A DNA stretch of 64,000 nt, taken from the NCBI RefSeq assembly GCF_018977255.1, contig NW_024704771.1, positions 3,410,001 to 3,474,000 on the forward strand, written 5' to 3'. Below the pieces are notes generated by a model. The model saw only the letters and a list, made by a program, of their open reading frames with translations, made no database searches and was not told where the DNA came from. A program made the position numbers and the translations under genes. Each line of letters begins with the position of its first letter. Position 1 is the stretch's first letter. Shown here one piece after another: positions 9,176-55,939 of the stretch. Source of the DNA: Callorhinchus milii. Taxonomy: Eukaryota.

Positions 9176-9180
9176 CTCAC

Positions 9181-9343: not shown

Positions 9344-9349
9344 CTGAGA

Positions 9350-10608: not shown

Positions 10609-10735
10609 CTGTTGGCTGCGGTGGTCTCGGCCTGCGTCCCCGCGCACAGGTACAGGCTGAGGGGGGCCGTGGACGCAGGTACCTCTGCGGCTGCCGCTCG
10701 GTCCTGCAGGATGTCGAAACTCAGACATGGCGCCC
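10609..10735 (-). CDS. GRWD1: GRWD1 exon 2 (APCLSFDIL...LYLCAGTQAE)
   Basis: Canonical AG/GTGAG, 127 nt, phase 1 to 2; PCLSFDI and LCAGTQA are GRWD1 hallmarks. Confidence 0.94.
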
Positions 10736-10749
10736 CTGGGGGGGGGGGG

Positions 10750-13224
10750 GAGAGAGAGTCACTCACTCACAGATACACACTGTCTCTCTCTCACTAACTC
10801 ACTCNNNNNNNNNNNNNNNNNNNNNNNNNNNNNNNNNNNNNNNNNNNNNNNNNNNNNNNNNNNNNNNNNNNNNNNNNNNNNNNNNNNNNNNNNNNNNNNN
10901 NNNNNNNNNNNNNNNNNNNNNNNNNNNNNNNNNNNNNNNNNNNNNNNNNNNNNNNNNNNNNNNNNNNNNNNNNNNNNNNNNNNNNNNNNNNNNNNNNNNN
11001 NNNNNNNNNNNNNNNNNNNNNNNNNNNNNNNNNNNNNNNNNNNNNNNNNNNNNNNNNNNNNNNNNNNNNNNNNNNNNNNNNNNNNNNNNNNNNNNNNNNN
11101 NNNNNNNNNNNNNNNNNNNNNNNNNNNNNNNNNNNNNNNNNNNNNNNNNNNNNNNNNNNNNNNNNNNNNNNNNNNNNNNNNNNNNNNNNNNNNNNNNNNN
11201 NNNNNNNNNNNNNNNNNNNNNNNNNNNNNNNNNNNNNNNNNNNNNNNNNNNNNNNNNNNNNNNNNNNNNNNNNNNNNNNNNNTGTCTCTCTCTCACTCAC
11301 TCTCTCACAGACACACACTGTCTCTCTTTCACACTCACTCTCNNNNNNNNNNNNNNNNNNNNNNNNNNNNNNNNNNNNNNNNNNNNNNNNNNNNNNNNNN
11401 NNNNNNNNNNNNNNNNNNNNNNNNNNNNNNNNNNNNNNNNNNNNNNNNNNNNNNNNNNNNNNNNNNNNNNNNNNNNNNNNNNNNNNNNNNNNNNNNNNNN
11501 NNNNNNTGTCTCTCTCTCACTCACTCTCTCACAGACACACACTGTCTCTCTTTCACACTCACTCTCTCAGACACACACTGTCTCTCTCTCACTCACTCTC
11601 TCACAGACACACTGTCTCTCTCTCACTCACTCACAGACACACACTGTCTCTCTCTCTCACACTCACTCTCTCAGACACACACTGTCTCTCTCTCTCACTC
11701 ACTCTCTCAGACACACACTGTCTCTCTTTCACACTCACTCTCTCAGACAGACACTGTCTCTCTCTCTCTCACTCACAGACACACACTGCCTCTCTCTCTC
11801 ACACTCTCACTCACAGACATACACTGTCTCTCTCTCTCTCTCACTCACAGACACACACTGTCTCTCTCTCTCTCACACTCACTCTTACAGACACACACTG
11901 TCTCTCTTTCACACTCACTCTCNNNNNNNNNNNNNNNNNNNNNNNNNNNNNNNNNNNNNNNNNNNNNNNNNNNNNNNNNNNNNNNNNNNNNNNNNNNNNN
12001 NNNNNNNNNNNNNNNNNNNNNNNNNNNNNNNNNNNNNNNNNNNNNNNNNNNNACACTCTCTCACTCACAGACATACACTGTCTCTCTCTCTCTCTCACTC
12101 ACAGACACACACTGTCTCTCTCTCTCTCACACTCACTCTTACAGACACACACTGTCTCTTTCACACTCACNNNNNNNNNNNNNNNNNNNNNNNNNNNNNN
12201 NNNNNNNNNNNNNNNNNNNNNNNNNNNNNNNNNNNNNNNNNNNNNNNNNNNNNNNNNNNNNNNNNNNNNNNNNNNNNNNNNNNNNNNNNNNNNNNNNNNN
12301 NNNNTCTCTTTCACACTCACTCTCTCAGACAGACACTGTCTCTCTCTCTCTCACTCACAGACACACACTGCCTCTCTCTCTCACACTCTCTCACTCACAG
12401 ACATACACTGTCTCTCTCTCTCTCTCACTCACAGACACACACTGTCTCTCTCTCTCACACACTCACTCACAGACACACACTGTCTCTCTCTCTCACACTC
12501 ACTCTCACAGACACACACTGTCTCTCTCTCACACTCACTCTCTCTCAGACACACACTGTCTCTCCCTCACACTCACTCTCTCTCAGACACACACTGTCTC
12601 TCTCTCTCTCTCTCAGACACACACTGTCTCTCTCTCTCTCACTCACATTCTCACAGACACACACTGTCTCTCTCTCACACTCACTCTCTCTCAGACACAC
12701 AGTCTCTCTCTCTCTCAGACACACACTGTCTCTCTCTCTCTCTCTCACTCTCTCACAGACACACACTGTCTCTCTCTCACACTCACTCTCTCACAGACAC
12801 ACACTGTCTCTCTCACACTCACTCTCTCACAGACACACNNNNNNNNNNNNNNNNNNNNNNNNNNNNNNNNNNNNNNNNNNNNNNNNNNNNNNNNNNNNNN
12901 NNNNNNNNNNNNNNNNNNNNNNNNNNNNNNNNNNNNNNNNNNNNNNNNNNNNNNNNNNNNNNNNNNNNNNNNNNNNNNNNNNNNNNNNNNNNNNNNNNNN
13001 NNNNNNNNNNNNNNNNNNNNNNNNNNNNNNNNNNNNNNNNNNNNNNNNNNNNNNNNNNNNNNNNNNNNNNNNNNNNNNNNNNNNNNNNNNNNNNNNNNNN
13101 NNNNNNNNNNNNNNNNNNNNNNNNNNNNNNNNNNNNNNNNNNNNNNNNNNNNNNNNNNNNNNNNNNNNNNNNNNNNNNNNNNNNNNNNNNNNNNNNNNNN
13201 NNNNNNNNNNNNNNNNNNNNNNNN
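10750..13224. repeat. CT/CA higher-order satellite (cagacacacactgtctctctctcacactcact units) in GRWD1 intron 1, with five N gaps
   Basis: Direct reading; gaps at 10805-11282, 11343-11506, 11923-12052, 12171-12304, 12839-13224. Confidence 0.93.
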
Positions 13225-24545: not shown

Positions 24546-25022
24546 ATTATTAAAAATGAACACAACGATATTGGATTGAGCGAGTTTGTTAAATCAGCTC
24601 ACAGTTGTAAGCCGTCCCTAATGAATGGAGATTCGTACAATCAAAAGTAAAAATGTTCTCACCAGAAAGTCATTTTGTTTGCAATCATTTCAACGGTCCA
24701 CTCCTGATAACAAGACACTGTCTTAACTACTCATTACTGTATCACTTACATAACCTATCCTTCAGATGAGATGTTAAACCTGTCCTGTCCTCCTGTACGG
24801 GTTAAAGATCTTCTGCGGAGCTATTTGAAAAGAGAAGGGAGTTTCTCTCTCCCAATGCCCTGCCGACAATCCCCCAAATAACACTGGTCACTCAATCCAC
24901 AGCTGTTCGTGGACACCGCTGTGTGCAACTGGCTGCACTTTGCAGTGCACAGTCACTATTCTTTACGGTATATCCTGTGAAGCACTTTGAGACGTCTCAA
25001 TGACGTGATAAGGTAAGAATTA

Positions 25023-25103
25023 TTATTTGAATCTAATTGAGGCGTACTCGATGGCTGGATATGATGACCTCCTTCCTGCTCTGCGATTGGCTTCTCTTGC
25101 ATC
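25023..25103 (-). CDS. Receptor A (- copy) terminal exon homolog: DAREANRRAGRRSSYPAIEYASIRFK*
   Basis: ttgttatttctag| acceptor; clear paralog of 43765-43899 with a 54-nt deletion. Whether it is translated in frame depends on splicing. Confidence 0.6.
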   Translation of the reverse strand, partial: DAREANRRAGRRSSYPAIEYASIRFK

Positions 25104-26659: not shown

Positions 26660-26930
26660 ATTTATATTATTTTCAGTCGTGATCTAAACGCGGGGAAGGA
26701 GCGGGTGAGGTGGAGGGATTGGCGGGAGAGAGATCCAAAGCTTCCGGGCGCAGGGGCTAAACGTACGGCCACCGATGGTGGAGCGGAGGGAACGAGGGTC
26801 AAGCAGGAGGCCGGAGCCAGTCGAGTGAAGGCAGCGGGCTGTGGGGTAAACAGGTCGGAGAGGTGGGGAGGTGCCAGGCCATGAAGGGATTTGAAGACGA
26901 GCGAGAAGATCTTGAAAACGCTAAACCTTG
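26660..26930 (-). mobile_element. Old L2 fragment immediately after the TM exon; orthologous copy at about 42670-42925 (+)
   Basis: Same position in both receptor genes, diverged, so it predates the duplication. Confidence 0.78.
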
Positions 26931-26942
26931 AGACGCACTCAC

Positions 26943-27089
26943 CAGTTTTCCTTCGAGCGAGGCAGTGCAGGCCCAAGACTATAGATATGGAGCCGGCAAT
27001 GACAAGCAGGGCAACTTTACCGTAAAAGATGATCTTGTGAACCTGAACCTCTGTGCTCACAGGAGGCAAACACCCTGCACTGAGGTCAA
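26943..27089 (-). CDS. Receptor A stalk/TM exon: VDLSAGCLPPVSTEVQVHKIIFYGKVALLVIAGSISIVLGLHCLARRKT
   Basis: cttgtctgcag| acceptor, |gtgagt donor, phase 1 to 1, hydrophobic helix with Lys (AAA at 27016-27018), RRK stop-transfer; paralog of 42526-42654. Confidence 0.85.
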
Positions 27090-27594
27090 CTGCAGACAAG
27101 AAAACACGTCATCAAACACTGATAATGCAGTTGTTATAATATGCAACCATAATGATCCTTGCCTTTGACATAACGGTGCTGACAGTCCTCGAATTTAGTA
27201 TCGCGCCGCACCGCGTTGTTGAGACGTTTCAAAGCGCTTCACAGAATATACCGTAAAATGGAGTGACTGTACATTTAGTCGGCAAAACATGGCAGCCAGT
27301 TTGCACAAACAGTCATGCAGAGAGTGACCAATGTTATCCAGGGGAGAGAGAGAAAAAAAAAACACCCTTCTCTTTTCCAATGGTGCCGTGGGAGATCTTT
27401 AAACAAATAAATGGCACATTTAAAACCGAGGATACCTGTGGTCGGGGGCGCGTCACAAAGCGCTTCACGGGATTCGCCGTAACATGTAGTAATTGTAATT
27501 ATATCGAATATCAAATGCAAGGTTTAATTTTATTATCTCTTCGTGATGATCCAACCTTTGGCTGAGGACCTGCTCTTTTCCAATAGCGCTGCAG

Positions 27595-28826
27595 GATCTT
27601 TAACATCCACCTGAACAGGCAGACGGGACCTCGGTTTAACGTCTAATCCAAAGGACAGCGTCTCCAACAATGCAATCTCTCCCCCAGCGCTGCATCAGCT
27701 TAGACTGTGATGATTCCAAGTCCCGAGTTGGGGCTTGAACCCACACAGAGGCCAGAGCGCTACCACTGAGCCAACACAGCCACAAAAGTCTGTTAGCTCT
27801 TATTTCATGAGTTGTTGCATTCAGCAAGCGTGTGCGCGGGGGACAGTGGTTAACCTCCTCTCGCTCTCTCTCCCAGTATCAGCAGGCGTCTGTGTAACCT
27901 GTCTGTGTCTACGAGTCCGCACATGTCTGTGTAAGGAGGTTATGTGATTAACAGTCAGAATCAGCAGAAAGGCATTGCTGCTTTTCCACCATTGTACATT
28001 TTCAGTTTCCCAATTTGTCATTTGACTTAAGACATATTCATTTTTAGTATCTTCCTCATCGCTGGTGCCTCCCCATCCATCGGTCTGTCTGCCCTTGGGA
28101 CGTCCTCCCAAAATGAAAGGCACTCTACAAATCCAATTGGTGGTTGTTGTTGCCTGTCCGTCCATCCCTCCTTCCCTCCCTCCATCCACCCGTCCGTTTT
28201 ATTATTAAATAAATCATATTTTTTTTAAATTTGGTCGCTCGAACCACGGCTGTTCGTGGCCACTGCTGCGCACAATTGGCTGCCACGTTTCAACGACAAA
28301 TTACACGAGCAATTCACTTCACAGGTTATTCTGTGAAGCGCTTTGAGACGTCTCAACGACGTGATAAGGCGCTATAATCAAATGCAAGGATGATTATCAT
28401 TATTACTATCATTATTGTCAGCTTGAACGTACCTGTTTCTGTGATAACTGTTAGGTTGATTTCTTTCGCTTGTGAAAATCCTGCAGTTTCAACTTTAACT
28501 GTGTAGGTGCCGGTGTCATTCAATTCCAAGTTGTCAAGTAGTAGTGAGGCATTCTCGGGAAAGATGGTTGTTCGACTCTCGTAGGATTCCATGGTGTCTC
28601 CTGTCCCAGAACAATTTAATGTAGATGCCTGGAAGCTCAACAATGTACACCACCTCGTATACACATGGATTGGTTTCAGTGAATGTTGGCAAGTCCAGGT
28701 AATTTTCACGTGATCACTGCGTGGGGTTCTGTATGAAACTGGCAGGAGAACTGAGCCATGCAATGTGCCGTTCACCGTCTGCTGCACAGTCAGTTCAAGG
28801 GCCTCAGCAGAGCCTGCGATAAAATA
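27595..28826. repeat. Inverted duplication arm, near-identical to 39921-41154
   Basis: Base-by-base reading: 1232 vs 1234 bp with about ten differences seen. Confidence 0.95.
28433..28813 (-). CDS. Receptor A IgV exon, CD2/SLAM/CEACAM-type N-domain (no B-F disulfide)
   Basis: ttttatcgcag| acceptor, |gtacgt donor, phase 1 to 1; G.SVLLPV, ITW, NASLLL.NL...DTGTYTV.V, EINLTV motifs. Confidence 0.9.
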
Positions 28827-28904
28827 ATAATTAAAATAATAATAATCCCTTCATTTAATACAGCGGATTATCACATTGTTGAGACGTCTCAAAGTGCTTT
28901 GCGG

Positions 28905-29336
28905 TGTTAGTATAAGAAAAGGTTTAATGGCTCATACGCAGCGGCCTATGAGTTGGGCGCCTGACTGGAGACCACGGGAATGCAAACATACTGATTGAGG
29001 AAGAACAGGGAGTGCGGACAAGGAGCTAAGTAAGGAGGACAACTGGTCTCAGCAAGCAAGAGGGACCTACACGAGCGCACATAGACTAGTGGAAAAGTAC
29101 CATCACGAGCAGATCACAAATACACCAAGTAGTTGGGTACAAATGCAACTAACCCACCAAAGAAAAGTTGAGCTGCACAGAATAAGAATTACAGGTCGCT
29201 GAGCCGCGAGCTGGTCATCAGACAAGACTGCTTATCTGCTAATATATTTCTGTTGCATGTGTCGTTGTCGCCTTGTTGTTGAATAAACTGTCTTGATTGT
29301 GCAACTCTGTGTTCAGACCTTTATTGGTTAATGGCA
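28905..29336 (+). mobile_element. Probable solo LTR
   Basis: TG...CA termini, AATAAA at 29282-29287 about 50 bp from the end, flanked by SINE pieces; no clear TSD. Confidence 0.45.
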
Positions 29337-29807
29337 AGGATCCAATTATAATAATCCTTGCATTTGATATAGCGCTTGTTCTGTGAAGCGATTCACAGAA
29401 CACACCGTGAAGTGAATTGACTGTATATTTGTGGGCGAACGCGGCAGCCAATGGCGCACAGCAATGTCCCACAAACAGTCGTAGATTGAAAATGACCAAT
29501 TTATTATTGTTTTTGGTTTCGGAGGGATTATTATTAGGCTCTGTGTGCAGTAAGGAAACTTGCCCGAGGTTTGGCCCTCTGCTTAATTATTTAATATTTA
29601 AAAAATATTAAATTAAAAAAGCAATAATTTGGACACTCAACCCACGACTGTTTGTGGGACGCTGCTGTGTGCAAATTGGCTGCAACATTTCGCCCACAAA
29701 ATACACAGTATACTCTGTGAAGAATTTTGAGATGCCTTAACGGTGCCATAAGGTGCTTTATGAAAGCAAGGATTAGTATTATTATGAGAGTGATAGTAAT
29801 AATCCTT

Positions 29808-30105
29808 GCATATAATAATAATAATAATCTTCTAGATGTCTCAAAGCGCTTCCCTGAATATACTGTGAAGTGAATTGATCGTATATTTGTGGGCGAACGC
29901 GGCAGCCAATTGCGCACAGCAGCGTCCCATAAACAGTCGTGGATTGAAAATGACCAATTTATTATTGTTTTTGGTTTTGAAGGGATTATTATTAGGCTCT
30001 GTGTGGAGTAAGGAAACTTGCCCAAGGTTTCGCCCTGCCTGGAATTGAACTCAGGTCTCTCGCTTGCAAAGCGAGTGCTCTAACCACTGAGCTACAGGAC
30101 TCCAC
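29808..30105 (-). mobile_element. tRNA-SINE, young subfamily
   Basis: Near-consensus copy in intron 1 of receptor A. Confidence 0.88.
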
Positions 30106-30740
30106 TATGAGGTGCTTTGTCTATATATTATAGGTGCAATGCCATAAACAATCATTGTTCACTATATTTATTTTTATTAATAATAATCCTTGCATTTGAT
30201 AAGGTGCCTTATCACATTCTGGATTCCCCCACCAGAAGAAATCGTAGCTACCCTATCGAATCCCTTTATCATTTTAAACACCTCCGATGACCCCTCAACT
30301 TTCTAAAAAATCAAGGGAATACACGACAGGTTTCTAGGTATGATAGACAAAATAGTTACATGAATTGTTAAGTCAAAATATAATAAAAAGCAATTGTTAA
30401 AAATTATAAAATTACAGGCGGTTTGAATGTCTAGTGTTATAGTTACGACGCCGTCTACAAGTATTGTGACATTTATTTGGATAAACTAACTCAAAAGTAT
30501 TAGCTTAGGCAAGTTTCCTTACTCGACACGTCTCTGTTTGTCTAGCGGCAAGTAAGAACCCGGTTGTTAGTCGATTGGCGGATCGCTTTCTGGGGGCATT
30601 AATCCCTTCACAAAAAAAACGAACTGAATGAATAATAATTTGTTCACTCAATCCACTACTGTTTGTGGGACACTGTTGTGCACAATTGGCTGCTGCATTT
30701 CGCCCACAAAATACAAAGTGGATTCACTTTACAGTATATT

Positions 30741-31059
30741 GTGGAGTCCTGTAGCTCAGTAGTTAGAGCACTCGCTTTGCAAGCGAGAGACCTGAGTTCA
30801 ATTCCAGGCAGAGGGCCAAACCTCGGGCAAGTTTCCTTACTCCACACAGAGCCTAATAATAATCCCTCCAAAACCCAAAACAATAATAAATTGGTCATTT
30901 TCAACTACGACTGTCTGCGGGACATCGCTGTGCGCAATTGGCTGCCGCGTTCGCCCACAAATATACAGTCAATTCACTTTACAGTGTGTTCTGTGAAGCG
31001 CTTTGGGACGTCCTCCCGACGTGAAAAGCGCTATATCAAATGCAAGGATTATTATTATA
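30741..31059 (+). mobile_element. tRNA-SINE, young subfamily, nested in an older SINE
   Basis: The host SINE breaks at cagtatatt and resumes at ctgtgagg. Confidence 0.9.
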
Positions 31060-31195
31060 TTCTGTGAGGTGCTTTGAGCCGTCTCAATGACATGATAAGG
31101 CGCTGTATCAAACACAAGGATTATTATATGTTATTATACTATTATATACGTTTGTCTGTAAAATACAGTCAATACATTTCAAATGCTTTATTCTT

Positions 31196-31790
31196 GTTCA
31201 GAGTTAACGGATCTTAAGGTCGGTTTAAATCCCTGTCCCGTTTGCTCCGAATTCTGCAACCCGTTTGTGAAGCCAAGACAAGGTAAGACGAGGGGAATCG
31301 AGAACCCGTGTAACTTAACAACAAAGCAAAGAGGAAAACATGAGACTTACAGGCGACGACGGTAAGGAAGACACAGGCAACCTGCTGGAAGGAGGTGAGG
31401 GACTCGGGTGGCTGGTACATGCTGTTCAGTGGAGAGACACGCACGAGGGGTGAGGATGACGTTAGAGATCAGAGAGGTGCTGCCACACACTGCTCGCCTC
31501 ACCTGCTCTGTGGTTTCACAAGCACCCGACGCACGCCACACACAAACAAGCCACACGACACACACACGACACACACAAACAAGCCCACCCGACACACGCA
31601 CAGTCACACGACACACACACGACACACACACACACACCCACCCACGCACACAAACACTCCCACACAGAGGGGAACGGATGTGACCCTAACTCACACCTCA
31701 CCCCAACAGCCCTCCCCCGCCACCCACTCACTCATTTCACGGGGACCTGGCCACCTGACTTTGTTTAAAGAGAGCAAATAATAATAATAA
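31196..31790. repeat. Inverted duplication arm (promoter/leader) pairing with about 33250-33826
   Basis: Near-identical over about 31196-31615, patchier towards the promoter. Confidence 0.93.
31351..31420 (-). CDS. Receptor A leader exon: MYQPPESLTSFQQVACVFLTVVA
   Basis: ATG after an acceptor, hydrophobic signal core, |gtaagt donor in phase 1 joining the V exon (T+GC=C, SAEA then LELTV). Confidence 0.85.
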
Positions 31791-32159
31791 TAATAGCCCA
31801 CAAAATACAGTCACTTCACTTGACAGTATATCCTGTGAAGCGCTTCGAGACGTCTCAATGAGGTGACGAGACGCTATATTCTGTGAAGCGCTTTGAGCTG
31901 TCTAGAAGACGTGAAAAGCGCTATATCAAATGCAAGTATTATTATTATATCAAATGATGTTTCAATAATATATTATAGATTATTGCGATAATGCTTTATT
32001 AGTATAGAAAATAATATAACAGTTATTGCCTTTTATAATAATGTAATAATTATATCAGATTATATGTATAATTGTATGTATAATTGGTCACCGTTTGTGG
32101 GACACTGCTGTTTCACCCACAAAATGTACAGTCAATTCACTGTGGCGTATATTCTGTAA

Positions 32160-32488
32160 ATAATAATAATAATAATAATAATCCTTGCATTTGATATAGC
32201 GCTTTTCACGTCGGGAGGACGTCCCAAAGCGCTTCACAGAACACACTGTAAAGTGAATTGACTGTATATTTGTGGGCGAACGCGGCGGCCAATTGCGCAC
32301 AGCAATGTCCCACAGACGGTCGTAGATTGAAAATAACCAATTTATTATTGTTTTGGGTTTTGGAGGGATTATTATTAGGCTCTGTGTGGAGTAAGGAAAC
32401 TTGCCCGAGGTTTGGCCCTCTGCCTGGGATTGAACTCAGGTCTCTCACTTGCAAAGCGAGTGCTCTAACCACTGAGCTACAGGACTCC
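32160..32488 (-). mobile_element. tRNA-SINE, young subfamily, between the two receptor promoters
   Basis: Near-consensus copy. Confidence 0.9.
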
Positions 32489-33601
32489 AAAAGCGCTTTG
32501 AGACGTCTCGAAGACGTGATACGGCGCGATATCAAGCGCAAGGATTATTATTATAGAAACATACAGTCTGTGTTACACAAATAGGAATCGCCATCGTCAG
32601 GGCCTGCAAGGGCTCCAATCGCAATGCGACTCCTCCCATCTCCATCAGTGAGTGAGTGAGTAGCCACAGCATTTTGACGGGCTTTATGTCTGAATTAACA
32701 GATATTTAAAGCGGATGAGAATACAAATGAATCAGGGTGGAGAGGTTCGGCCAATTTACCGGGGTCTGTGTGCCTCGTTGGACGAAAGGCGGAGAGAGGG
32801 AGAGAGAGAAAGCGAAAGAGAGGCAGTGCGAGAATTTGTACTATATGCAACATATTTGATATATAATCTAATTATTATAATAACAGGCAATAACTATTGT
32901 TGTATTGTTATTTTCTATACTAATAATAATTGATAACATATCATTTGATATAGGTCCTTATCATGTCAGTGAGACGTCTTGAAGCGCCTCACAGAATCTA
33001 GTGTATTTTGCGTGCAATAACTATAAATAATTATTAAGTGGGTAATAATCCCTCCAAAAAAAATTATAATTTGGTCTCTGAATCCTTGACTGTTTATGGG
33101 ACACTGCTGTGAGCAATTGGAAGCCGTGTTTCACCCACAAAATATACAGTCAATTTGCTTTATAGTGTTTCCGTGAAACGCTTTGAGACGTCTCGATAAC
33201 GTGATAAGGCGCTGTATCAAATGCAAGGATTATTAATACATATTATATACTATAATTATTATTGTCTCTCTTTAAACAAAGCGGTGTGATTGGGGTGAGG
33301 TGTGAGTTGGGGTAATTCTGAGTCACATCCTTTCCGTCGTGCGTGTGTGTGTGTCGTGCGTGTGTGCCGTGTGGCGGTGCGTGTGTCGGGTGGGCTTGTT
33401 TGTGTGTGTGTCGTGTGGCTGTGCGTGTGTCGGGTGGGCTTGTTTGTGTGCGTCGTGTGTGTGTCGTGTGGCTTGTTTGTGTGTGCCGTGCGTCGGGTGC
33501 TTGTGAAACCACAGAGCAGGTGAGGCGAGCAGTGTGTGGCAGCACCTCTCTGATCTCTAACGTCATCCTCACCCCTCGTGCGTGTCTCTCCACTGAACAG
33601 C

Positions 33602-33671
33602 ATGTACCAGCCACCCGAGTCCCTCACCTCCTTCCAGCAGGTTGCCTGTGTCTTCCTTACCGTCGTCGCCT
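33602..33671 (+). CDS. Receptor B (+ copy) leader exon, identical to receptor A leader
   Basis: Same 70 nt, |gtaagt donor; preceded by an 81-nt 5' UTR intron (33520-33600) mirrored at 31422-31502. Confidence 0.87.
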
Positions 33672-34086
33672 GTAAGTCTCATGTTTTCCTCTTTGCTTTG
33701 TTGTTAAGTTACACGGGTTCTCGATTCCCCTCGTCTTACCTTGTCTTGGCTTCACAAACGGGTTGCAGAATTCGGAGCAAACGGGACAGGGATTTAAACC
33801 GACCTTAAGACCCGTTAACTCTGAACCCTTTCGAATCAATTTATCCAATTCTTTAAGTGTTCAAATAATAATTGAGTCGCTCAATCCATGACTGTTTGTG
33901 GGACACCTCTGTGCGCCTATAGCTGCAAAGGTTCGCCCACAAAATACAGTCAATTCACTTACAATATACAGTATTCTGTGAAGTTCGTTGAGAGATCGCA
34001 ACAACGTGATAAGGCGCTATATCAAATGCAAGGCTTATTATTATGATTAACTGGAAGATAGCGGTTCCTTGATGCTTCATTCAAAG

Positions 34087-34155
34087 AGCACGTACCAGCC
34101 ACCCAAGTTTCTCACCTCCTTCCAGCAGACTGCTGGTATCCTCCTTACCATCGCG
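34087..34155 (+). pseudogene. Degenerate third copy of the receptor leader exon
   Basis: ACG tac cag cca ccc aag ttt ctc acc tcc ttc cag cag act gct ggt atc ctc ctt acc atc gcg: clear paralog of the leader with ATG to ACG and no gtaagt donor. Confidence 0.75.
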
Positions 34156-34664
34156 CAGCACTTCGCTTCAATTCACTTTGTAGGATATTCTTTTGACATC
34201 TCAATGGCACCCTATCAAACGCAAGGATTATTATAATTCATATTATTTCTGACTCTTTTAGGGTTTGAAATTTTGTATGGTGTGCTGTGAAGTTAGATTG
34301 GTCGTGTAGTTTGAGGTTGTTAATAATAACCCTTGCACATATACACGCACTGACTGTATACTTGCGGGAGAAGCATGGCAGCCGATTGCACACCGCAAAC
34401 AGTCATAGATTGAGTGGCCACATTATTATTTAATAATTTCTTTTTTGAGTGATTATTATCCCCGGAACCAATCCACCAATCCAGTAAGAATCGGGTTCCT
34501 ACTTACTGCTGAGTAAACGGGCGCGTGTGTGGAGTAAGGAAACTTGCCCAATGTTTCTCCCTGCCCGGGAATCGTACCCAAGTCCTCTCGCTTGCGAGGC
34601 GAGTGCTCTAACCACTGAGCTACAGGACTCCATAATAATAATAATCCTTGCATTTGATAGAGTC

Positions 34665-35025
34665 CTGTAGCTCAGTGGTTAAGAGCATTCACCTCGCCAG
34701 CGAGATACCTGGGTTCGATTCCCACCGCGGCAAAATGTTGGCCAAGTTTCCTTACTCCACACGCTACCGTTTACCGAGCAACAAGTAGGACCTGGTTGTT
34801 TGTTAATCGATTTACAGATTGCTTTTCCGGGGGTAATAATTCCTTCAAAAATAATAATAATTTCTTCACGCAATCCACGACTCTCTGTGGGACGCTGCTG
34901 TGCGCAATTGGCTACCACATTTCGCCCACAAAATGTACAGTCAATTCACTTTGCAGCATATCCTGTGAAGCGCTTTCAGACGTCTCGAAGACGTGATAAG
35001 ACGCTATATTAAATACAAGGATTAA
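34665..35025 (+). mobile_element. tRNA-SINE, older long subfamily
   Basis: Head, central segment and tail present; sits head-to-head with a - strand copy ending at about 34631. Confidence 0.85.
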
Positions 35026-36049
35026 CATTAATATATAGCGCCTTATCGTGTTGTTGAGATATCTCAAAGCGCTTCACAATATACTGTAAAGTAAACTGAC
35101 TGTATTTTTTGGGTGATAATGCTCCTTTTCAGACATCTGTCTGCGTTCCCTTTGAAAGAATCGATGGATTCTGCCTCAACTGCATTTGTGTCAGAAAATT
35201 CCACAATGCCACAACCTATCGTGTAAAATATTGTTTTCGAACCAACACTTTAATTATTTTTTTAGGAGTAACTTAAATTTCTGGCCTCTCAATCCTGACT
35301 CACAGACATATGGATGCAATTATTTCTCGTGATGTTTTTTGACCGTTTGTGGGGCAGACGCTGCTGTGCGCAATTAGCCGCCGTGTTTCGCTCACAAAAT
35401 ACAGATTCAGTTCACTTTACAGTACATCCTGCAAAGCGCTTCGAAACGTCTCAACAACATGATAATGAACCATATCAAATGCAAAGCTTACTATTAGTAT
35501 TATTATTGACTAAATAGGATTTGCCTGTAACTCACACGGTCAGATTAAGTGTTATGGTCCCGACTGATATGACTTAGGTGAGTGAGTTTTATAGTAGATT
35601 CTGTGAAGCTGGATCAAGTGCAAGGATTATTATTATTATTAGAATTTTACAGCACAGAAGGCCACCGTGCCTGCTCTCTGGGGAGAGCTCTGTGTACGAC
35701 ATTCCTCTCCTGCCTTTTCCCCAAATACTTCCATGTTTTTCCTTCGAAATTTGTCAAATTCCCTTGTGAAAGCTCTGAAATGCTACAAAAAAAATCTTAA
35801 GCCCACACACCGGTGGCATTTCATTCCCCGTTCTATATATAACAGATCTTTTATTTACCAAGAGTAAATAGTAAAGTTTATTTATTGATTGCTAATAATA
35901 AATAAATTTATCTCTGGGGGTAAAAAAAAAAAGAATTTGGTCACTCAATCCACGACTGTTTTTTCCACAAAAAATATATACGCTCAATCCACTTTACAGT
36001 ATATTCTGTGAAGCGCATTGAGACATCTCAATGATGTGATAAGAGGCCC

Positions 36050-36351
36050 GTGGAGTCCTGTAGCTCAGTGGTTAGAGCACTCGCTTTGCAAGTGAGAGAC
36101 CTGAGTTCAATTCCAGGCAGAGGGCCAAACCTTGGGCAAGTTTCCTTACTCCACACAGAGCCTAATAATAATCCCTCCAAAACCAAAACCAATAATAAAT
36201 TGGTCATTTTCAATCCACGACTGTTTGTGGGACATCGCTGTCACAATTGGCTGCCGCGTTCGCCCACAAATATACAATCAATTCACTTTACAGTCTATTC
36301 GAGAAGATGTGAAAAGCCCTGTATCAAATGCAAGGATTATTATTATTATTA
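36050..36351 (+). mobile_element. tRNA-SINE, young subfamily, inserted in an older SINE tail
   Basis: Near-consensus copy with a partly deleted tail. Confidence 0.88.
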
Positions 36352-36719
36352 TGCTATTATTATATCAAATGCAAGGTTTATTACTATTATTTGGCCACAA
36401 GTCTCTTCACTCTACGATTAAGTATTTGTTGATTTCAGCGATTTAATTGAGTTTCTCTCTCTACTATGTTTTCAGTCTTCAATTGTAATTTCAGTGCATA
36501 AAGATTATTAATATATATATTACATAAGATCTCATACAATAATTTATTTTATAACCAGCTATTATTGTCAAAAGCGGTAACTATGTTTTATAGACATTTT
36601 ATAGACCACAGGCATTTTGCAGACTTCAAGCTCCGTAATAAAAGAAATAATAAAATAATAATTTAGTCACTCAATCCACCACTGTGTGTGGGACACTGCT
36701 GTGTGAAATTGGCTGCCGC

Positions 36720-37030
36720 ATTTCGCCAACAACAACAACACGACATTTTATAGAGCGCCTTTCATGTCGGGAGGACGTCCCAAAAGCGCTGAACAGTCGG
36801 GTGTCGGGGCCCGAGCGTGGGGGGGAGCGGTGGTGTAGGGGTGAGGGGAGGCAGAGAGGTGGGAGGGCGACCAAAGGCACGATCGAAGAGAAAGGTCTCG
36901 AGACCGGCCTTGCAGGAGGCGAGGGAGGAAGTGAGGCGAAGGGACTGTGGGATGGAGTTCCAGAGTGTGGGGGCAGAGAGGCTGAAAGCCCGGCCACCGA
37001 TGGTAGGGCGGGTCGGGCGGGAGACATGGA
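36720..37030 (-). mobile_element. L2 LINE 3' fragment
   Basis: L2 3' motifs and tail. Confidence 0.8.
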
Positions 37031-37811
37031 GTCACTACTCTCTGCCGTGTATCTTGTGAAGCACTTTTGAGACGCCTCGACAGCGTGAAGGCGCTACAGC
37101 AAATGTCAAATAGGAGATTTCCCCCAAAAAAATATGCCCATGATTTTCTGTCGCCACTTTAGTACAGATATCTCTCTCTGGAACGGTGTGTGATTTCCTC
37201 AGTGGCTGCTTTGTGGCATGCGCACCTCATATTTTGGGGCTTAAATATTAAAACATTCTTTAAATATAAAAAAAAATCGAAGACGTGAAAAGCGCTTCAT
37301 GAAATGCAAGGATTACGATATTTTTTTTTATTAAAAAAAATGTCCACGACACTCGCGCCTGCCAGAGCTTTATATCATGTCTTTACGTCAATCAATCATT
37401 GATCTTGACTGATACACACACAGACATTGTTTTACTAGTACAGTAATAATCTAATATAAAGTATAATATAAAATATATTAATATAATATAATGTAAAGTA
37501 TAATAATCATCCTTGTATATTTGATATAGCGCTTTTCACGTCTTCCAGTCGTCTCAAAGCGCTTCACAGAACAGACTGTAAAATGAATTGACTGCATATT
37601 TGTGGGCGAAACGCGGCCTTCAAACAGCCGCGGATTGAGGTGAACAAATCATTATTGGGTTTTTTGAGGGATTATCATCAGGCGTGTGGAGTAAGGAAAC
37701 TCGTCGAAGGTTTTATCCTGCCGGGAAATGAACCCAGGTCTCTCACTTGCGAGGCGAGTGATCTAATTACTGAGCTACAGGACTCCACAATTATATTAAT
37801 ATTATATTACA

Positions 37812-37993
37812 TTAATAATCTAATATAAAGTGTAATAATCTAATATAAAGTATAATAATCTAATATGATGTACAATAATCTAATATAAAGTATAATAATC
37901 TAATATAAAGTATAATAATCTAATATAAAGTATAATAATCTAATATAAAGTATGATAATCTAATATAAAGTATGATAATCTAATATAAAGTGT
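37812..37993. repeat. 20-bp AT-rich tandem repeat (taatctaatataaagtataa), about 9 units
   Basis: Direct reading. Confidence 0.93.
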
Positions 37994-38348
37994 TATAACA
38001 CTGAAATCTACAATCCATATTCGATTGTTTGGTTGCAAGCGTAACAGCAACGGGTACAACTAGTAACTATATAAGATGTTTATATAATCACGCAGGACAT
38101 CAATTTAACGTCTCATACAAGCGACAGCACCTCCAACAACACAACCCACCACAATATTTCACTGGGGTGTCAGGATTCTCACTCAGAGACGCGAGCCAGG
38201 CTCCAAGCCGAGCCGGGCTGACATATCTTGAGACTTAATGTAGAACGTGAAAAAGGAGACACAGACGTGTCTGTGCATTTCCAAGCTCACACGTGTAACA
38301 AATACTGCTTGGTGCAATCACACATTGGATGCCACGTATTTGTTTTTT

Positions 38349-38645
38349 TGCAAGTGAGAGACCTGAGTTCAATTCCAGGCAGAGGGTGAAACCTCGGGCA
38401 AGTTTCCTTACTCCACACAGAGCCTAATAATAATCCCTCCAAAACCAAAAACAATAATAAATTGGTCATTTTCAATCCACGACTGTTTGTGGGACATTGC
38501 TGTGCGCAATTGGCTGCCGCGTTCGCCCACAAATATACAGTCAATTCACTTTACAGTGTGTTCTGTGAAGCGCTTTGGGACGTCCTCCCGACGTGAAAAG
38601 CGCTATATCAAATGCAAGGATTATTATTATTATTATTATTATTGT
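38349..38645 (+). mobile_element. tRNA-SINE, young subfamily, 5' truncated
   Basis: Starts at ttgcaagtgagagacc; full 3' part. Confidence 0.88.
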
Positions 38646-39404
38646 TGTATAACAGATACAATGATCGGCCAGTGCATGCAATGTTATAACTAATAAATCA
38701 TAATTTAACCTTCGCCTTCGATATAGCGGCTCATCCCATTGTCGAGATGTCCCAAAGCGCTTCGCAGAATATACAGCCAAGCGAAGTTGGCCCACAAAAT
38801 ATACAGTCAATACACTTTTCAGTAAAATAATAATAATCCTTGCATTCGATTATCGTGCCTTGTCACGTGTTCGAGACTCTCAAAGCGCTTCACAGAATAT
38901 ACTGTAAAGTGAATTGACTGCATATTTTGTGGGCAAAACACGGCAGCCAATTACGCACAGCAGCGTCGTGGATTGAGTGACCAACTTAGTATTCTTATTA
39001 TTCTGAAGGAATTATTACCCCCGGAAACGCGATCCGCCAATCGACTGAACAACCGGGTTCGTACTTACTGCTCTAACCACTGAATGACAGGACTCTTTTG
39101 TGAATCCGTGAAGTGTTGTGAGATGTCGCCATGATGCGGTAAGGCGCTAGAGCAAATGCAAGGATTATTATTATTTTATGGACGCAACACGGCAGCCAAT
39201 TGCACACAGCAGGGTCCCACAAACACGTGGATTAAGTGACCAAATCATTATTTACTTTTATTTTTTTATTCTCGTCGATGAGGTCTGGGACCCAGGGTTT
39301 GGAAAGCCAAAGCTTATTTACTCCACACGTAAATTGCCACACATGGCAGTAAATTGGAAACCAGTTGTTAATTGATTGGCGGATCGCTTTCTGGGAGTAA
39401 TAAC

Positions 39405-39709
39405 AATAATAATCCTTGCATTTGATATAGCGCTTCTAGACGTCCCAAAGTGCATCACAGAACACACTGTAAAGTGAATTGAATGTATATTTGTGGGCGA
39501 ACGCGGCAGCCGATGGCGCACAGCAATGTCCCACAAACAGTCGTGGATTGAAAATGACCAATTTATTATTGTTTTTGGTTTTGGAGGGATTATTATTAGG
39601 CTCTGTGTGGAGTAAGGAAACTTGCCCGAGGTTTGGCCCTCTGCCTGGAATTGAACTCAGGTCTCTCGCTCGCAAAGCGAGTGCTCTAACCACTGAGCTA
39701 CAGGACTCC
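39405..39709 (-). mobile_element. tRNA-SINE, young subfamily, nested in an older SINE
   Basis: Near-consensus copy. Confidence 0.88.
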
Positions 39710-39933
39710 AAAAATTATCCCTAAAAAAATAAGTTGGTCACTCAGTCCGCGACAGTTTATGGGACCTTGCTGTGCGCAATTGGCTGCCACGTTTTGCCAA
39801 AATATATAGTCAAATCACTTTACAGTATATTCTGTGAAGCACTTTGAGACGTCCCAATGACATGACAAAGCGCTACATCAAATGTAAGGTTCATTATTAT
39901 TATTCTGATTATTATTATACTATTTTATCGCAG

Positions 39934-40317
39934 GCTCTGCTGAGGCCCTTGAACTGACTGTGCAGCAGACAGCGGTGAACGGCACATTGCATGGCTCAGT
40001 TCTCCTGCCAGTTTCATACAGAACCCCACGCAGTGATCACGTGAAAATTACCTGGACTTGCCAACATTCACTGAAACCAATCCTTGTGTATACGAGGTGG
40101 TGTACATTGTTGAGCTTCCAGGCATCTACATTAAATTGTTCTGGGACAGGAGACACCGCAAAATCCTACGAGAGTCGAACAACCATCTTTCCCGAGAATG
40201 CCTCACTACTACTTGACAACTTGGAATTGAATGACACCGGCACCTACACAGTTAAAGTTGAAACTGCAGGATTTTCACAAGCGAAAGAAATCAACCTAAC
40301 AGTTATCACAGAAACAG
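39934..40317 (+). CDS. Receptor B IgV exon, CD2/SLAM/CEACAM-type
   Basis: Same splice sites as the - copy, 384 nt, phase 1 to 1; five N-glycosylation sequons (NGT, NCS, NAS, NDT, NLT). Confidence 0.9.
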
Positions 40318-40966
40318 GTACGTTCAAGCTGACAATAATGATAGTAATAATGATAATCATCCTTGCATTTGATTATAGCGCCTTATCACGTCGTTGAGAC
40401 GTCTCAAAGCGCTTCACAGAATAACCTGTGAAGTGAATTGCTCGTGTAATTTGTCGTTGAAACGTGGCAGCCAATTGTGCGCAGCAGTGGCCACGAACAG
40501 CCGTGGTTCGAGCGACCAAATTTAAAAAAAATATGATTTATTTAATAATAAAACGGACGGGTGGATGGAGGGAGGGAAGGAGGGATGGACGGACAGGCAA
40601 CAACAACCACCAATTGGATTTGTAGAGTGCCTTTCATTTTGGGAGGACGTCCCAAGGGCAGACAGACCGATGGATGGGGAGGCACCAGCGATGAGGAAGA
40701 TACTAAAAATGAATATGTCCTAAGTCAAATGACAAATTGGGAAACTGAAAATGTACAATGGTGGAAAAGCAGCAATGCCTTTCTGCTGATTCTGACTGTT
40801 AATCACATAACCTCCTTACACAGACATGTGCGGACTCGTAGACACAGACAGGTTACACAGACGCCTGCTGATACTGGGAGAGAGAGCGAGAGGAGGTTAA
40901 CCACTGTCCCCCGCGCACACGCTTGCTGAATGCAACAACTCATGAAATAAGAGCTAACAGACTTTT

Positions 40967-41225
40967 GTGGCTGTGTTGGCTCAGTGGTAGCGCTCTGGCC
41001 TCTGTGTGGGTTCAAGCCCCAACTCGGGACTTGGAATCATCACAGTCTAAGCTGATGCAGCGCTGGGGAGAGATTGCATTGCTGGAGACGCTGTCCTTTG
41101 GATGAGACGTTAAACCGAGGTCCCGTCTGCCTGTTCAGGTGGATGTTAAAGATCTCCTGCGGCGCTGTTTGAAAAGAGAGGGGAGTTCCTCTCTCTCCGG
41201 GTGTCCTGGCCAACAATCCCCCAAA
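40967..41225 (+). mobile_element. DeuSINE-type SINE (tRNA head plus Deu domain)
   Basis: gctgtcctttggatgagacgttaaaccgaggtcc...gttaaagatc...gaaaagagaggg...gtgtcctggccaac resembles the Deu domain as recalled. Mirror copy at about 27560-27780 (-); fragments at about 24755-24880 and 46345-46460. Confidence 0.75.
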
Positions 41226-42237: not shown

Positions 42238-42525
42238 CTCAATCCACGACTGTTTGTGGGACGCTGCTGTGCACAATTGGCAGCCGTGTTTCACCTACAA
42301 AATTCACAAGTCAATCCACTTTACAGTATATTCTGTGAAGCACTTTGAGACGTCTCAACCTGATAAGGCGCTATAACAATTGCAAGGATTATTACTATCA
42401 TATCATGTCATAAACACCGCATTATCAATGTTATATATGTCATAAACACCGCATTATCAATGTTATATATAATCAGCTTTATATATTACCAGTATCTGAT
42501 AACATGTGGACTTACTTGCCTTCAG

Positions 42526-42654
42526 TAAACAACAGCACCGGTTTGCTTCCGAACAACACAACGGATGCGGGTGGCAGTATAATTCCCATGGTTGTTGTTC
42601 CTGGCTCCATATGTACAGTCTTGGTTCTGTACTGCCTCGCTCGAAAGCGAACCG
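42526..42654 (+). CDS. Receptor B stalk/TM exon: VNNSTGLLPNNTTDAGGSIIPMVVVPGSICTVLVLYCLARKRT
   Basis: cttgccttcag| acceptor, |gtgagt donor, phase 1 to 1, uncharged 21-aa TM, RKR stop-transfer. Confidence 0.87.
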
Positions 42655-43035
42655 GTGAGTGCATCTTAATGTTTGCGTTTTCAAGGTCCTCTCACTCCTC
42701 TTCAAATACCTCATGCCCTGTTACCACCCTACCTCTCTGACCTGATTTCTCCTCAACCCACTACCCACCGCCTCCGTTTGACTTGCTCCGGCCTCCTGCT
42801 TGTCCCTCGTGCTCCACCATCGGCAGCCGCACTTTCAGCCCGAAGCTTTGCGACTCTCTCCCTCAATCACTCCACCTCGCCCCCTCCCTCCCCTCTTTTA
42901 GATCATGACCGAAGACCTTCCTCTTCAACCGTGATCAAGTGCTCTGGAGTGCCACCCTGCGTGAGCTATCAATGCAAACGTGTTGTTCAGATCGCTCTGT
43001 GTATTAATGCCTTTGGTTAACTGTTTTTAATTTAG

Positions 43036-43097
43036 CTGCAGGACGAAGGAGCAAGGGATTGGATGTGGCAGCAGACACTGGCGAGGCAGTGGCCCAG
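43036..43097 (+). CDS. Receptor B cytoplasmic exon 1 (AAGRRSKGLDVAADTGEAVAQ)
   Basis: tttttaatttag| acceptor (second in-frame AG 6 nt downstream), |gtaagc donor, phase 1 to 0. Confidence 0.8.
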
Positions 43098-43764: not shown

Positions 43765-43899
43765 GATGCTGATGGCCACACACCTTCTGAGACCATTGTC
43801 TACGCAATGATCAGCAACTTCCCAAGTGAACCCCGTCACGGAGCAGGAAGTAGGACATCAGATCTAGCCATGGAGTACGCTTCAATTAGATTCAAATAA
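43765..43899 (+). CDS. Receptor B terminal exon with two ITIM-type motifs (IVYAMI, MEYASI)
   Basis: ctgtttgtgtccag| acceptor, phase 0, DADGHTPSETIVYAMISNFPSEPRHGAGSRTSDLAMEYASIRFK*. Confidence 0.87.
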   Translation, partial: DADGHTPSETIVYAMISNFPSEPRHGAGSRTSDLAMEYASIRFK

Positions 43900-44759
43900 T
43901 AATAATAATAATCCTTATGTTCGACATAGCGCCTTATCACGCTGTTGAGACGTTTCAAAGCACTTCAGAGAAAACACGGTAAAGTGACTGTATTTTGTGA
44001 CAGCCAATTGCGCACAGCAGCGTCCCACAAACACACACGGTCGTGGGTTGAGTGACCACATTATTTTTTTCGACTAACAACTTTTTTGACTACTTACTGC
44101 TCGGTAAACGGAGGCGTGTGCGTGGAGTAAGGAAACTAGACTATGGTTTCACCCCTCCCGGGAATCAAACCCGGGTCCTCTCGCTTGCACTAACCACTAC
44201 ACTACACGATGCAACCTAAGCAGTGCAGAGGATTGGCATTTCTCCTGGTATCAGCTTGAAGACTGTTATACCCTCAACATTCAAGACTGCGACAAATTGT
44301 TGGAAAAAAAGTCTTCGTTTCAGTCTTTTAATCAATTTTAAGCAAAACAGCTTTCAAATTCGGCTGATTTTAAGAACTTTTCATGATAGATTTTATATTG
44401 TAGGGGCGAAACCTTAGGCAAGTTTCCTTACTCCGCATGCCTCTGTTCACCTCGCAGTAAGTAGGAACCTGGTTGTTAGTGGATTGGTTTTTTTTTGTGC
44501 TGTGTAAATGTTATCTGCTGTTGTTATTTTAACTTTTTTTGACCCATGAAAAGAGGGTGGACAAAAGGAATTCAAAGATCTGCCACGATATAATAAACTG
44601 GCAGAACAGGCTCAATGTGCTGAATAGTGCTCCTCCTGTTCCTTATCTGAAACTCACTCCAAAGTCGGTCCATTAGTAATGCTGGCACTGAATTTTTGCT
44701 TCTCACTAACCTCTCCTTGTTACATTTCCAAGCTTCTCACTGAGCATGTTTAACGGATA

Positions 44760-46095: not shown

Positions 46096-46844
46096 CTGAA
46101 TGGAGGGAATGGACAGGTCTATACGGACTTCAATCTCATGGCTCAATTGGCAGATTAACCGTATTAACGGTATATTAATGATAGCCTTTATCCAGAGGCC
46201 TCAGTTGAGGATTTGTTTGCTCAGCCGGGTGTCTGACACATGTGGAAACCCATCACCGTGCTTAAGAGTCTCCAAACCAAGCTGAAAATTCCATGCATCC
46301 ACCTTCACGTGGGACGTGGAATCACATCATCTAAGATGAAGCTCCAACGCAGTGCTGGGGGAATGCTGCATTGCTGGAGGTGCCGTCCTTCAGGTGAGAC
46401 ATTAAATCGAGATCCCCATCTCATGAATCGACAACGTGATCAAATTCCAGGATTATTGTTTAGGTTTGGGTACTCAGTTATCAAAGGATATAAAACCAAT
46501 AATAATAATAATCCTTGCATTTGATACAGAGCCTTATCACATCTCAAAGCGCTTCACAGGATATACTGTCAAGTGAACCGATTGTGTATTACGTGGATGA
46601 AACTCGGCAGCTAATTGATCACAGCAGCCAGTCGTGGTTGTGGACCAAATTATTTATTTATTGTTGGGATTATTACCCCCAGAAAGCAAACTGCCGATCG
46701 ATTAAAAACTGGGTTCCTACTTACTGCTACAAACAGAGGTGTGTGAGTGTGGATAACGAGTAAGGAAAGTTGCCTAAGGTTTCACCCCGGCTGGGAATCG
46801 AACCTGGGTCCTCTCGCTTGTGGGGTGAGCGCAGTAACCACTAC

Positions 46845-54425: not shown

Positions 54426-54702
54426 AGACGAGCCCTCCAATCCTATTGAAATTAGTCCTTTCTTTATAATATGAACAATTTTCTTTTGCTCACATGTTTT
54501 GGATGAAATTATTTTAAGAATACAACATAGATCTTCATATCCTACCAGTCTAAGCATTTGTAGGTCCTTCACAATAGATGTTGGTCAGAATCTTCAATCC
54601 TAACAGTCACAGCAAAAGAATAAGAAAGGTGCTGCCTTGTGGAAGTGCCATGGGCTTTAAATGAAAGGTTGACACAAACAAACACACACACAAACCAAGG
54701 TA

Positions 54703-55025
54703 ATAATAATACTAATAATCCTTGTATTTGATATAGCGCTTTTCACGTCGGGAGGACGTCCCAAAGTGCTTCACAGAACACACTGTAAAGTGAATTGACT
54801 GTATATTTGTGGGCGAACGCGGCAGCCAATTGCGCACAGCAATGTCCCACAGACAGTCGTAGATTGAAAATGACCAATTTATTATTGTTTTTGGTTTTGG
54901 AGGGATTATTATTAGGCTCTGTGTGGAGTAAGGAAACTTGCCCGAGGTTTGACCCTCTGCCTGGAATTGAACTCAGGTCTCTCACTTGCAAAGCGAGTGC
55001 TCTGACCACTGAGCTACAGGACTCC
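54703..55025 (-). mobile_element. tRNA-SINE, young subfamily
   Basis: Near-consensus copy. Confidence 0.9.
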
Positions 55026-55939
55026 AAAGATGGCTCCACTCTGATATCAGTCCTCCTAAAGAAAAAACACAAGGCAATCAGTGCATCTGCAACAATTTGT
55101 GTTCCAGATTATTATAATAATCCTTCCATTTAATATAGCGTTTTATCACATCATTGAGACTTCGCAAAATATATTGTAAAGTGAATTGATTGTATATTTT
55201 GTGGGCGAGACTCTGTATTTTGTGGGCAAAGTTTAATAGGACCAAACTGTACAAGAATCACCAAATTGTGATTAAAAATCACTTTCACCTTAATGGGAAT
55301 GCTAGGTGCAAACCACCTGCCACCTGCTGGGGTTTCTTGAAGTGTTCTTTAAATATGGTAAGCAGCACTTTAAGGTATAATGCAAATTTTAAGTGCATTT
55401 ATTGAATAATTAACCTTGCATTGCATATAGTGCTTTATCAGGTCGTTGAGACGTCTCAAAGCAGAATATACTGTACAGTCTACAGAATATACTGTAAAGC
55501 ATATTGACTGTGTATTTTGTGGGTGAAACCCGGCAGCCAATTGCGCACAGCGGGGTCCCCCAAACAGTTGTGGATTGAGTGACCAATTTTTTTTGAGGGA
55601 TTATTACACTCGGAAAAGCAATCCGTCAATCACCTAATAACTGGGTTCAAACTTATTGCTAGATAAACAGAGGCCTGTTTGTGGAGTAAGGAAACTTGCC
55701 TAAGGTTTCGTCCCACCCAGGAATCTAACCCAGATCCTCTCGCTTGCGAAGAGAGTGCACTAACCAATACGTACAGGGCTCCACATATGTATAAATACAT
55801 AACTAAACATGTCCGGGATGCTATCAGGGTGTTGACTTAACTGGTAGTGACAAGCTGAGCCATAGTCGAGTTATCAGGAGTTTATTGCAATGGATTTTAG
55901 AGTCAAAATAGATCAGTTTCAGTCAAAATGAATCGCTTT

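Follow-up and report, generated by a model that had tools for sequence, protein, structure and literature searches.

Two short, nearly identical inverted tracts in an otherwise diverged pair of head-to-head V-domain receptor genes of Callorhinchus milii: probable recent gene conversion

How can two neighbouring genes be almost identical in two short, separated stretches and clearly diverged in the homologous sequence around them? The question is raised by a pair of immune-receptor genes in a 64,000-nucleotide (nt) window of the genome of the elephant shark, Callorhinchus milii (NCBI RefSeq assembly GCF_018977255.1, contig NW_024704771.1, positions 3,410,001 to 3,474,000), the first base of which is position 3,410,001 of the unplaced, 4.1-Mb scaffold MU249860.1 (GCA_018977255.1); all coordinates given here are those of the window. 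The two genes, A on the minus strand and B (LOC103189486) on the plus strand, are head-to-head receptors with a single immunoglobulin (Ig) variable (V) domain each, with 2.2 kb from ATG to ATG in a compact locus of 19 kb. In our assessment they are probably an old duplicate pair in which two short stretches, one covering the V exon and part of intron 2 (T1) and one covering the leader exon and the region upstream of it (T2), were later homogenised by interlocus gene conversion.

The limits of the two tracts were obtained by extending and refining the pairs found in a repeat search, including an inverted pair of 1096 nt at 99% (27682-28777 and 39973-41068), with BLAST and global alignments. The resulting copies are as follows.

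27597 to 28826, minus strand: T1 in gene A, inverted relative to 39921-41152 (13 nt of intron 1, V exon and 835 nt of intron 2)
39921 to 41152, plus strand: T1 in gene B, the inverted match to 27597-28826
31196 to 31620, minus strand: T2 in gene A (200 nt upstream of the ATG, the 70-nt coding exon of the leader and 153 nt of intron 1)
33402 to 33826, plus strand: T2 in gene B, the inverted match to 31196-31620

T1 aligns over 1229 nt at 99.3% identity (Kimura two-parameter distance (K2P) 0.007), with 8 substitutions and two indels, one of 3 bp that keeps the frame and one of 1 bp, and T2 aligns over 425 nt with 4 mismatches and no gaps (99.1% identical, K2P 0.009); their divergence is indistinguishable (8/1229 versus 4/425, p = 0.52). 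An earlier note on this DNA had reported two near-identical inverted tracts here, the first of them beginning 13 nt before the acceptor of the V exon, and both statements agree with the alignments: A and B alike have 13 nt between the 5' end of T1 and the acceptor (39934 in B, 28813 in A), and the tract begins within the (ATT)n tail of a short interspersed element (SINE) or where that tail ends. The note also took this tract to be confined to the ligand-binding exon, and here it has to be corrected. The V exon (384 nt in B, 381 nt in A) is the exon content of T1, and 68% of the tract is intron 2, which is rich in transposable elements, mostly SINE and other repeats, and is 99.6% identical over the 835 nt that belong to the tract.

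The V exons of A and B are 98.7% identical and have no synonymous differences. The three differences between them all alter the protein, which is too few to show positive selection, and the counts of differences in the exon and in the intron of T1 did not differ significantly (p = 0.12 per nucleotide, 0.68 per event). For the one 4-nt cluster of differences in the V exon (GCAA/ATGG) we found no local donor, neither version being present elsewhere in the 64-kb window.

When the two arms were compared block by block outside the tracts, identity along them proved far from uniform: collinear blocks are 70-85% identical, with a pooled mismatch of 21% against 0.73% in the tracts (Fisher p = 4e-77). 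The longest perfect run in the tracts measures 556 nt, for which the probability at the identity seen outside is ~1e-57. The flank upstream of T2 is 82% identical between A and B; the transmembrane (TM) exon (42526-42654 in B, 26943-27089 in A) is 70.5% identical (K2P 0.375), the repeat fragment downstream of it 83%, and the end of the tail exon with its 3' flank 85%. The best preserved stretch of old collinearity is the following.

42268 to 42913, plus strand (counterpart in A 26672-27307): old collinear block made up of a shared SINE, the TM exon and a repeat fragment

Over 611 nt this block is 76% identical (K2P 0.29). The shared fragment after the TM exon, described in the note as an L2 element, gave no Pfam match in three translated pieces and is a dispersed repeat of unverified class. 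The claims that the TM and tail exons are diverged, and that the intron-1 sequences are unrelated and of unequal size, were both confirmed: intron 1 is 2537 bp long in A and 6262 bp in B, and at word size 7 nothing in the two is collinear, with no 99% patch in the 2.4 and 6.1 kb that lie outside the tracts.

The repeats of intron 1 give these events a relative order. The SINEs in it differ between A and B and lie 2.8-5.9% from the local subfamily consensus (one copy 0.7%), accompanied by many older fragments, as against a per-copy divergence of ~0.4% in the tracts. Since the copy-specific SINEs are mostly older than the tracts, the two introns must already have been unlike when the tracts formed, and for this reason a single recent and continuous duplication is ruled out. 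As a rough estimate from sequence divergence, the duplication would be 20-50 times as old as the tracts (K2P 0.17-0.38 versus 0.007-0.009).

The ends of the tracts are equally informative. Upstream of T1, the following element abuts the tract.

39837 to 39920, plus strand (counterpart in A 28827-28899): 3' end of a SINE directly upstream of T1 in gene B

This SINE end is 84% identical between A and B over 73 nt with 5 gap events, and identity rises to 99.3% right after it. The 3' end of T1 lies inside a dispersed repeat with further copies at 24755-24851, 46311-46416 and 38095-38144. At its upstream end, T2 stops in a GT-rich imperfect minisatellite (33339-33493 in B, 31537-31666 in A) that lies upstream of both leaders, has a 44-bp unit with ~2.2 copies in B, and aligns poorly between the two genes. 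On the intron side, T2 in A adjoins an A/T-rich stretch that by eye resembles the 3' tail of a SINE, with BLAST homology to a SINE tail at 31059-31160. At three of the four edges (both edges of T1, with the SINE end on its 5' side and the dispersed repeat on its 3' side, and the upstream edge of T2) homology continues beyond the tract at the old level, and the tracts therefore replaced homologous DNA. Because all four ends lie in or beside repeats and not at exon borders, the limits of the tracts look mechanical and not set by selection.

These findings support the earlier suggestion of an old inverted duplication with recent, patchy conversion, identity stepping from ~99% to 70-85% within homologous sequence. 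In the proposed sequence of events, a membrane receptor with a single CEACAM-like V domain would have undergone an inverted duplication long ago, after which B would have retained an inhibitory-type tail and A would have come to carry a lysine in its TM segment and lost a 62-nt exon. Much later, T1 and T2 would have been homogenised as sequence was copied non-reciprocally from one of these inverted genes to the other within one chromosome, either in two events near in time or in a single discontinuous one, with copying stopping at breaks in homology such as copy-specific SINE insertions, SINE tails and the minisatellite. The outcome would be two genes with the same signal peptide, nearly the same ligand-binding domain and the same 200 nt before the ATG, joined to unlike membrane and signalling parts. 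Conversion through a cDNA intermediate was considered and ruled out, as both tracts include intron sequence. The transfer may have run in either direction, since an inversion between the two arms of T1 could have exchanged the central segment between A and B.

Calling the 200 nt before the ATG a promoter, as the note did, is an unverified assumption. These nucleotides could be an intron, because a splice acceptor of good quality (ctctccactgaacag) directly abuts the ATG of the leader exon.

Several points weigh against homologous conversion as the whole explanation. Past the intron-side end of T2, A and B are unrelated and show no old homology. Intron 1 of B moreover contains a relic that fits poorly with a simple homologous replacement in T2.

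34084 to 34156, plus strand: decayed third copy of the leader in intron 1 of gene B, 82% identical to the leader, with SINE fragments on both sides

The relic lies 420 bp downstream of the working leader of B, has ACG in place of ATG and is without a donor site; no mirror relic was found in gene A, so that intron 1 of B is alone in having one. Gene A, for its part, is unannotated and could be a pseudogene that acts solely as a conversion partner, and any adaptive value of matched ectodomains is something that we infer by analogy with other receptor pairs.

Because of the relic, T2 may have been added upstream of the old leader of B rather than swapped in. We therefore considered an account, possible though clearly less favoured than conversion throughout, in which T1 is an ordinary conversion and T2 is the product of one-sided repair, that is, a duplicative copy. 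A break upstream of the original leader of B would have been repaired from the homologous upstream region of A, with synthesis running through the leader of A and 153 nt of its intron and the new end being joined without homology, so that a new working leader came to stand ahead of the old one, which then decayed. The relic, present in B alone, is what such an event would leave behind; its 82% identity is near the pooled old identity of A and B (79%), and the two ends of T2 differ as expected, with old homology past the upstream end and unrelated sequence past the intron-side end. However, an older tandem duplication of the leader, later lost in A, would explain the relic equally well, the SINE fragments on its flanks make its origin untraceable, and inversions between the T1 arms could have shifted the central segment, so that the intron 1 now in B may once have been that of A. 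A bolder and slightly less probable proposal is that a regulatory-plus-leader module and a ligand-binding module are homogenised as separate cassettes, and that the transplant of T2 gave B a new first coding exon and fossilised its old one. The indistinguishable divergence of T1 and T2 (p = 0.52) would also suit a single recent inverted duplication of the 5' half, from the upstream region through intron 2, beside an older paralogue and with intron 1 remodelled afterwards. This is improbable, as the copy-specific SINEs of intron 1 (2.8-5.9% from consensus, with older fragments besides) are far older than tracts diverged by 0.7-0.9%, no 99% patch is left in 2.4 or 6.1 kb of intron, and homology at the old level begins directly outside three of the tract edges.

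An assembly artefact, by which one or both copies of a tract were misplaced or duplicated while the scaffold was built, seems slightly less probable still. MU249860.1 is unplaced, and the inverted repeat has visibly confused the model that RefSeq currently gives for gene B. Against this, the copies were assembled separately and differ by 12 substitutions and 2 indels, each tract sits in its own diverged yet homologous flanks, and the protein model from an older assembly has the same chain of leader, V, TM and tail for B; false palindromes are, in addition, normally contiguous and perfect, unlike two patches that lie 2.4-6.1 kb apart. Least credible of all, to the point of being negligible, is purifying selection on an old duplicate with no copying between the genes. 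The tracts do hold the exons for the signal peptide and the ligand-binding domain, as selection would have it, yet 1201 of the 1654 tract bases are non-coding, including the SINE-derived intron at 99.6%, and not one synonymous difference occurs in the V exon, next to a TM exon at 70.5% identity. Selection as the cause is excluded because the high identity spans 835 nt of repeat-rich intron and all synonymous sites. Interlocus conversion between old duplicates remains the reading that we prefer.

Gene B was reconstructed as a spliced model with AG/GT sites at all introns.

33602 to 33671, plus strand: exon 1, coding part, encoding the leader MYQPPESLTSFQQVACVFLTVVA and ending in phase 1 (spliced model compared with the older RefSeq protein P0151)
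39934 to 40317, plus strand: exon 2, V-set Ig domain (Pfam V-set E = 2e-10; 100% match to XP_042200694.1)
42526 to 42654, plus strand: exon 3, stalk and uncharged TM segment (AG/GT splice sites; agrees with P0151)
43036 to 43097, plus strand: exon 4, cytoplasmic, 62 nt (spliced model)
43765 to 43899, plus strand: exon 5, tail with the immunoreceptor tyrosine-based inhibitory motif (ITIM) IVYAMI and the ITIM-like MEYASI, the stop codon lying in the (TAA)n tail of a SINE

The product has 259 amino acids (aa), and three residues of the V domain are all that separates it from the older RefSeq protein (P0151, XP_007908094.1). Its tail carries one canonical ITIM and one ITIM-like sequence, both as motif matches only. 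The three variant residues of P0151 are L>V near the signal cleavage site, E>K in FPENAS and L>R in SLLLDN; none of the three matches gene A, which suggests either that the V exon is highly variable between alleles or that the old assembly contains errors.

The translated V exon (39936-40316) is a 100% match to the current 254-aa protein P0002 (XP_042200694.1, "uncharacterized protein LOC103189486"). This current model begins with MRLTGDDGKEDTGNLLEGG, encoded at 31340-31396 on the plus strand, that is, inside the leader copy of gene A and antisense to it; such a start is without a signal peptide and calls for a splice over 8.5 kb to the V exon of B. The older model P0151 begins with the expected leader at 33602, and the current RefSeq first exon of LOC103189486 is probably wrong, an annotation artefact created by the inverted repeat. 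In an exact-sequence lookup, P0151 returned no contig and P0002 returned only the scaffold of the window.

No annotated C. milii protein was found for gene A, as a protein homology search with P0151 returned P0002 alone, and LOC103189486 is the sole gene called within 10 kb on either side of the locus. The exons of A could nevertheless be placed by comparison with B.

31351 to 31420, minus strand: exon 1, leader, identical to that of B (alignment and spliced model)
28433 to 28813, minus strand: exon 2, V domain (alignment with gene B)
26943 to 27089, minus strand: exon 3, stalk with a cysteine and TM segment with a lysine (KIIFYGKVALLVIAGSISIVLGLHCLARRKT), 70.5% nucleotide identity to exon 3 of B
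25023 to 25103, minus strand: homologue of the tail exon, reading DAREANRRAGRRSSYPAIEYASIRFK and a stop in phase 0

Exons 1 to 3 are open and have AG/GT splice sites. In its V domain A has lost one alanine codon relative to B and carries the changes L>H and AK>ME, the latter being the 4-nt cluster. The phase-0 reading of the tail-exon homologue ends in AIEYASIRFK before the stop. We found no homologue in gene A of the 62-nt exon 4 of B, and because this cytoplasmic exon is lost, the old tail exon of A is probably out of frame: the predicted direct splice from exon 3 (phase 1) to 25103 would shift the frame and yield a tyrosine-free tail of 23 aa, GCKRSQSQSRKEVIISSHRVRLN, followed by a stop. 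On this predicted splicing, gene A looks like an activating-type partner derived from an inhibitory ancestor, and at the level of sequence the architecture of the locus is that of a paired inhibitory/activating receptor.

Within the old block, the TM exon is more diverged than the noncoding sequence on either side of it (75-83%). Most of this divergence falls in the 5' half, which encodes the stalk and differs in length by 18 nt, and the 3' half is well conserved.

The relationships of the V domain were approached through structure and sequence. Like the N-terminal IgV-like domain of CEACAM proteins it is without the canonical B-F disulfide, having no cysteine at the canonical positions of the B and F strands (B strand SVLLPVSY, F strand GTYTVKV), and its AlphaFold model is a confident V-type fold (predicted local distance difference test score, pLDDT, 91). 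A fold search with this model gave generic IgV matches, for example VCBP3, PD-L1 and CAR; assignment to a family by fold or by language-model features (Atlas) was tried and set aside, as the results were generic V-set only. The best sequence matches in the PDB are CEACAM6, CEACAM1 and CEACAM8, over ~35 residues only (E = 6.5e-6). The V domain has the motif FPENASLLL..L.LNDTGTY, a form of F/YP-x-NASLL...NDTG-Y, which appears to resemble the segment around strands E and F in the N domains of CEACAM proteins. The layout of a leader exon joined in phase 1 to a V exon, followed by TM and cytoplasmic exons with an ITIM, is common to many Ig receptors and does not discriminate between them. The V domain is CEACAM-like, and membership of the CEACAM family proper is unproven.

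Homologues of the V domain, 29-47% identical, occur in rays, sharks, amphibians, turtles and birds and are named CEACAM3/5-like (bird, amphibian), HEPACAM-like or uncharacterised; the nearest relatives found are elasmobranch proteins with 46-47% identity in the V domain. Among the closest elasmobranch homologues (P0013 from Pristis pectinata, P0163 from Mustelus asterias, P0022 and P0035), some are short and tailless with an arginine in the TM segment, and others have tails with ITIM-like or immunoreceptor tyrosine-based switch motif (ITSM)-like sequences. Judged by these sequence features, a split into activating-type and inhibitory-type forms seems widespread among the homologues. Mapped onto the V-domain model, the differences between A and B sit at the A/A' junction, where C' starts and where C'' ends. 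Of these three positions, two lie on the C-C'-C'' side, weak evidence from a predicted structure that the differences may lean that way.

The region as a whole is crowded with a tRNA-derived SINE of ~330 bp with an (ATT)n tail and with related fragments, and the matches of an Rfam scan were limited to the tRNA-like heads of these SINEs. Copies such as 38347-38643, 32150-32492, 54701-55028 and 3759-4090 lie 0.7-2.8% from the local consensus, by which measure the family appears recently active. In both genes the last exon is followed by an antisense SINE, and the first TAA of its (TAA)n tail coincides with the stop codon (43895-43910 in B, 25008-25030 in A); this SINE appears to predate the A/B duplication and may supply the stop codon of both genes. 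Runs of N are confined to 8599-13224 (six, of 130-478 nt each), with none in or near the tracts.

If these readings hold, the locus has consequences beyond its annotation, where it already points to an unannotated and probably activating partner gene. Were the two modules indeed homogenised as cassettes, the logic of decoy or paired receptors, together with its upkeep by conversion, would already have existed when the jawed vertebrates first diversified; were T2 a transplant, a conversion-type repair would have rewired the 5' end of a gene.

A literature search found no description of the C. milii pair, and close parallels exist elsewhere. In primates, SIGLEC11 and SIGLEC16 are inhibitory and activating partners in head-to-head arrangement, separated by 9 kb, that keep distinct signalling ends, and repeated, fragmented interlocus conversion there hits the upstream region and the ligand-binding V-set exons (PMC5701461). 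Unlike the C. milii pair, they are mammalian sialic-acid lectins with several C2 domains; their converted block covers ~3 kb and several exons, in contrast to two short patches with an unconverted intron between them, and the function of both partners has been shown by experiment, whereas the roles of the C. milii pair are predicted from sequence (PMC5701461). Closer in domain type are the Xenopus ceacam pairs, such as ceacam301/303, which have a CEACAM-like V domain and putative ITIM-bearing and activating partners in opposite orientation, and in which recent conversion of the N-domain exon stands between very dissimilar flanking introns and the differences arising after conversion are non-synonymous (PMC5112662). 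There, conversion is reported to cover exactly the exon and its splice signals and to leave the leader exon unconverted, whereas T1 of C. milii extends through 835 nt of intron 2 and is accompanied by another tract over the leader and upstream region; the frog genes also form clusters of dozens, in contrast to the single pair seen here (PMC5112662). The same scheme, in which similar ectodomains are coupled to opposite signalling and gene conversion makes the genes evolve in concert, is described for the mammalian CEACAM1-related pairs (PMC2832619), SIGLEC5/14 (PMC4042635) and CD300A/C (PMC12447643), which belong to other species and families and have other gene arrangements. The process is already known from mammals and frogs, and the C. 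milii pair adds a case, one that would extend the picture of gene-converted paired receptors to a holocephalan, of the earliest-branching living lineage of jawed vertebrates, and to a very simple receptor with a single domain.

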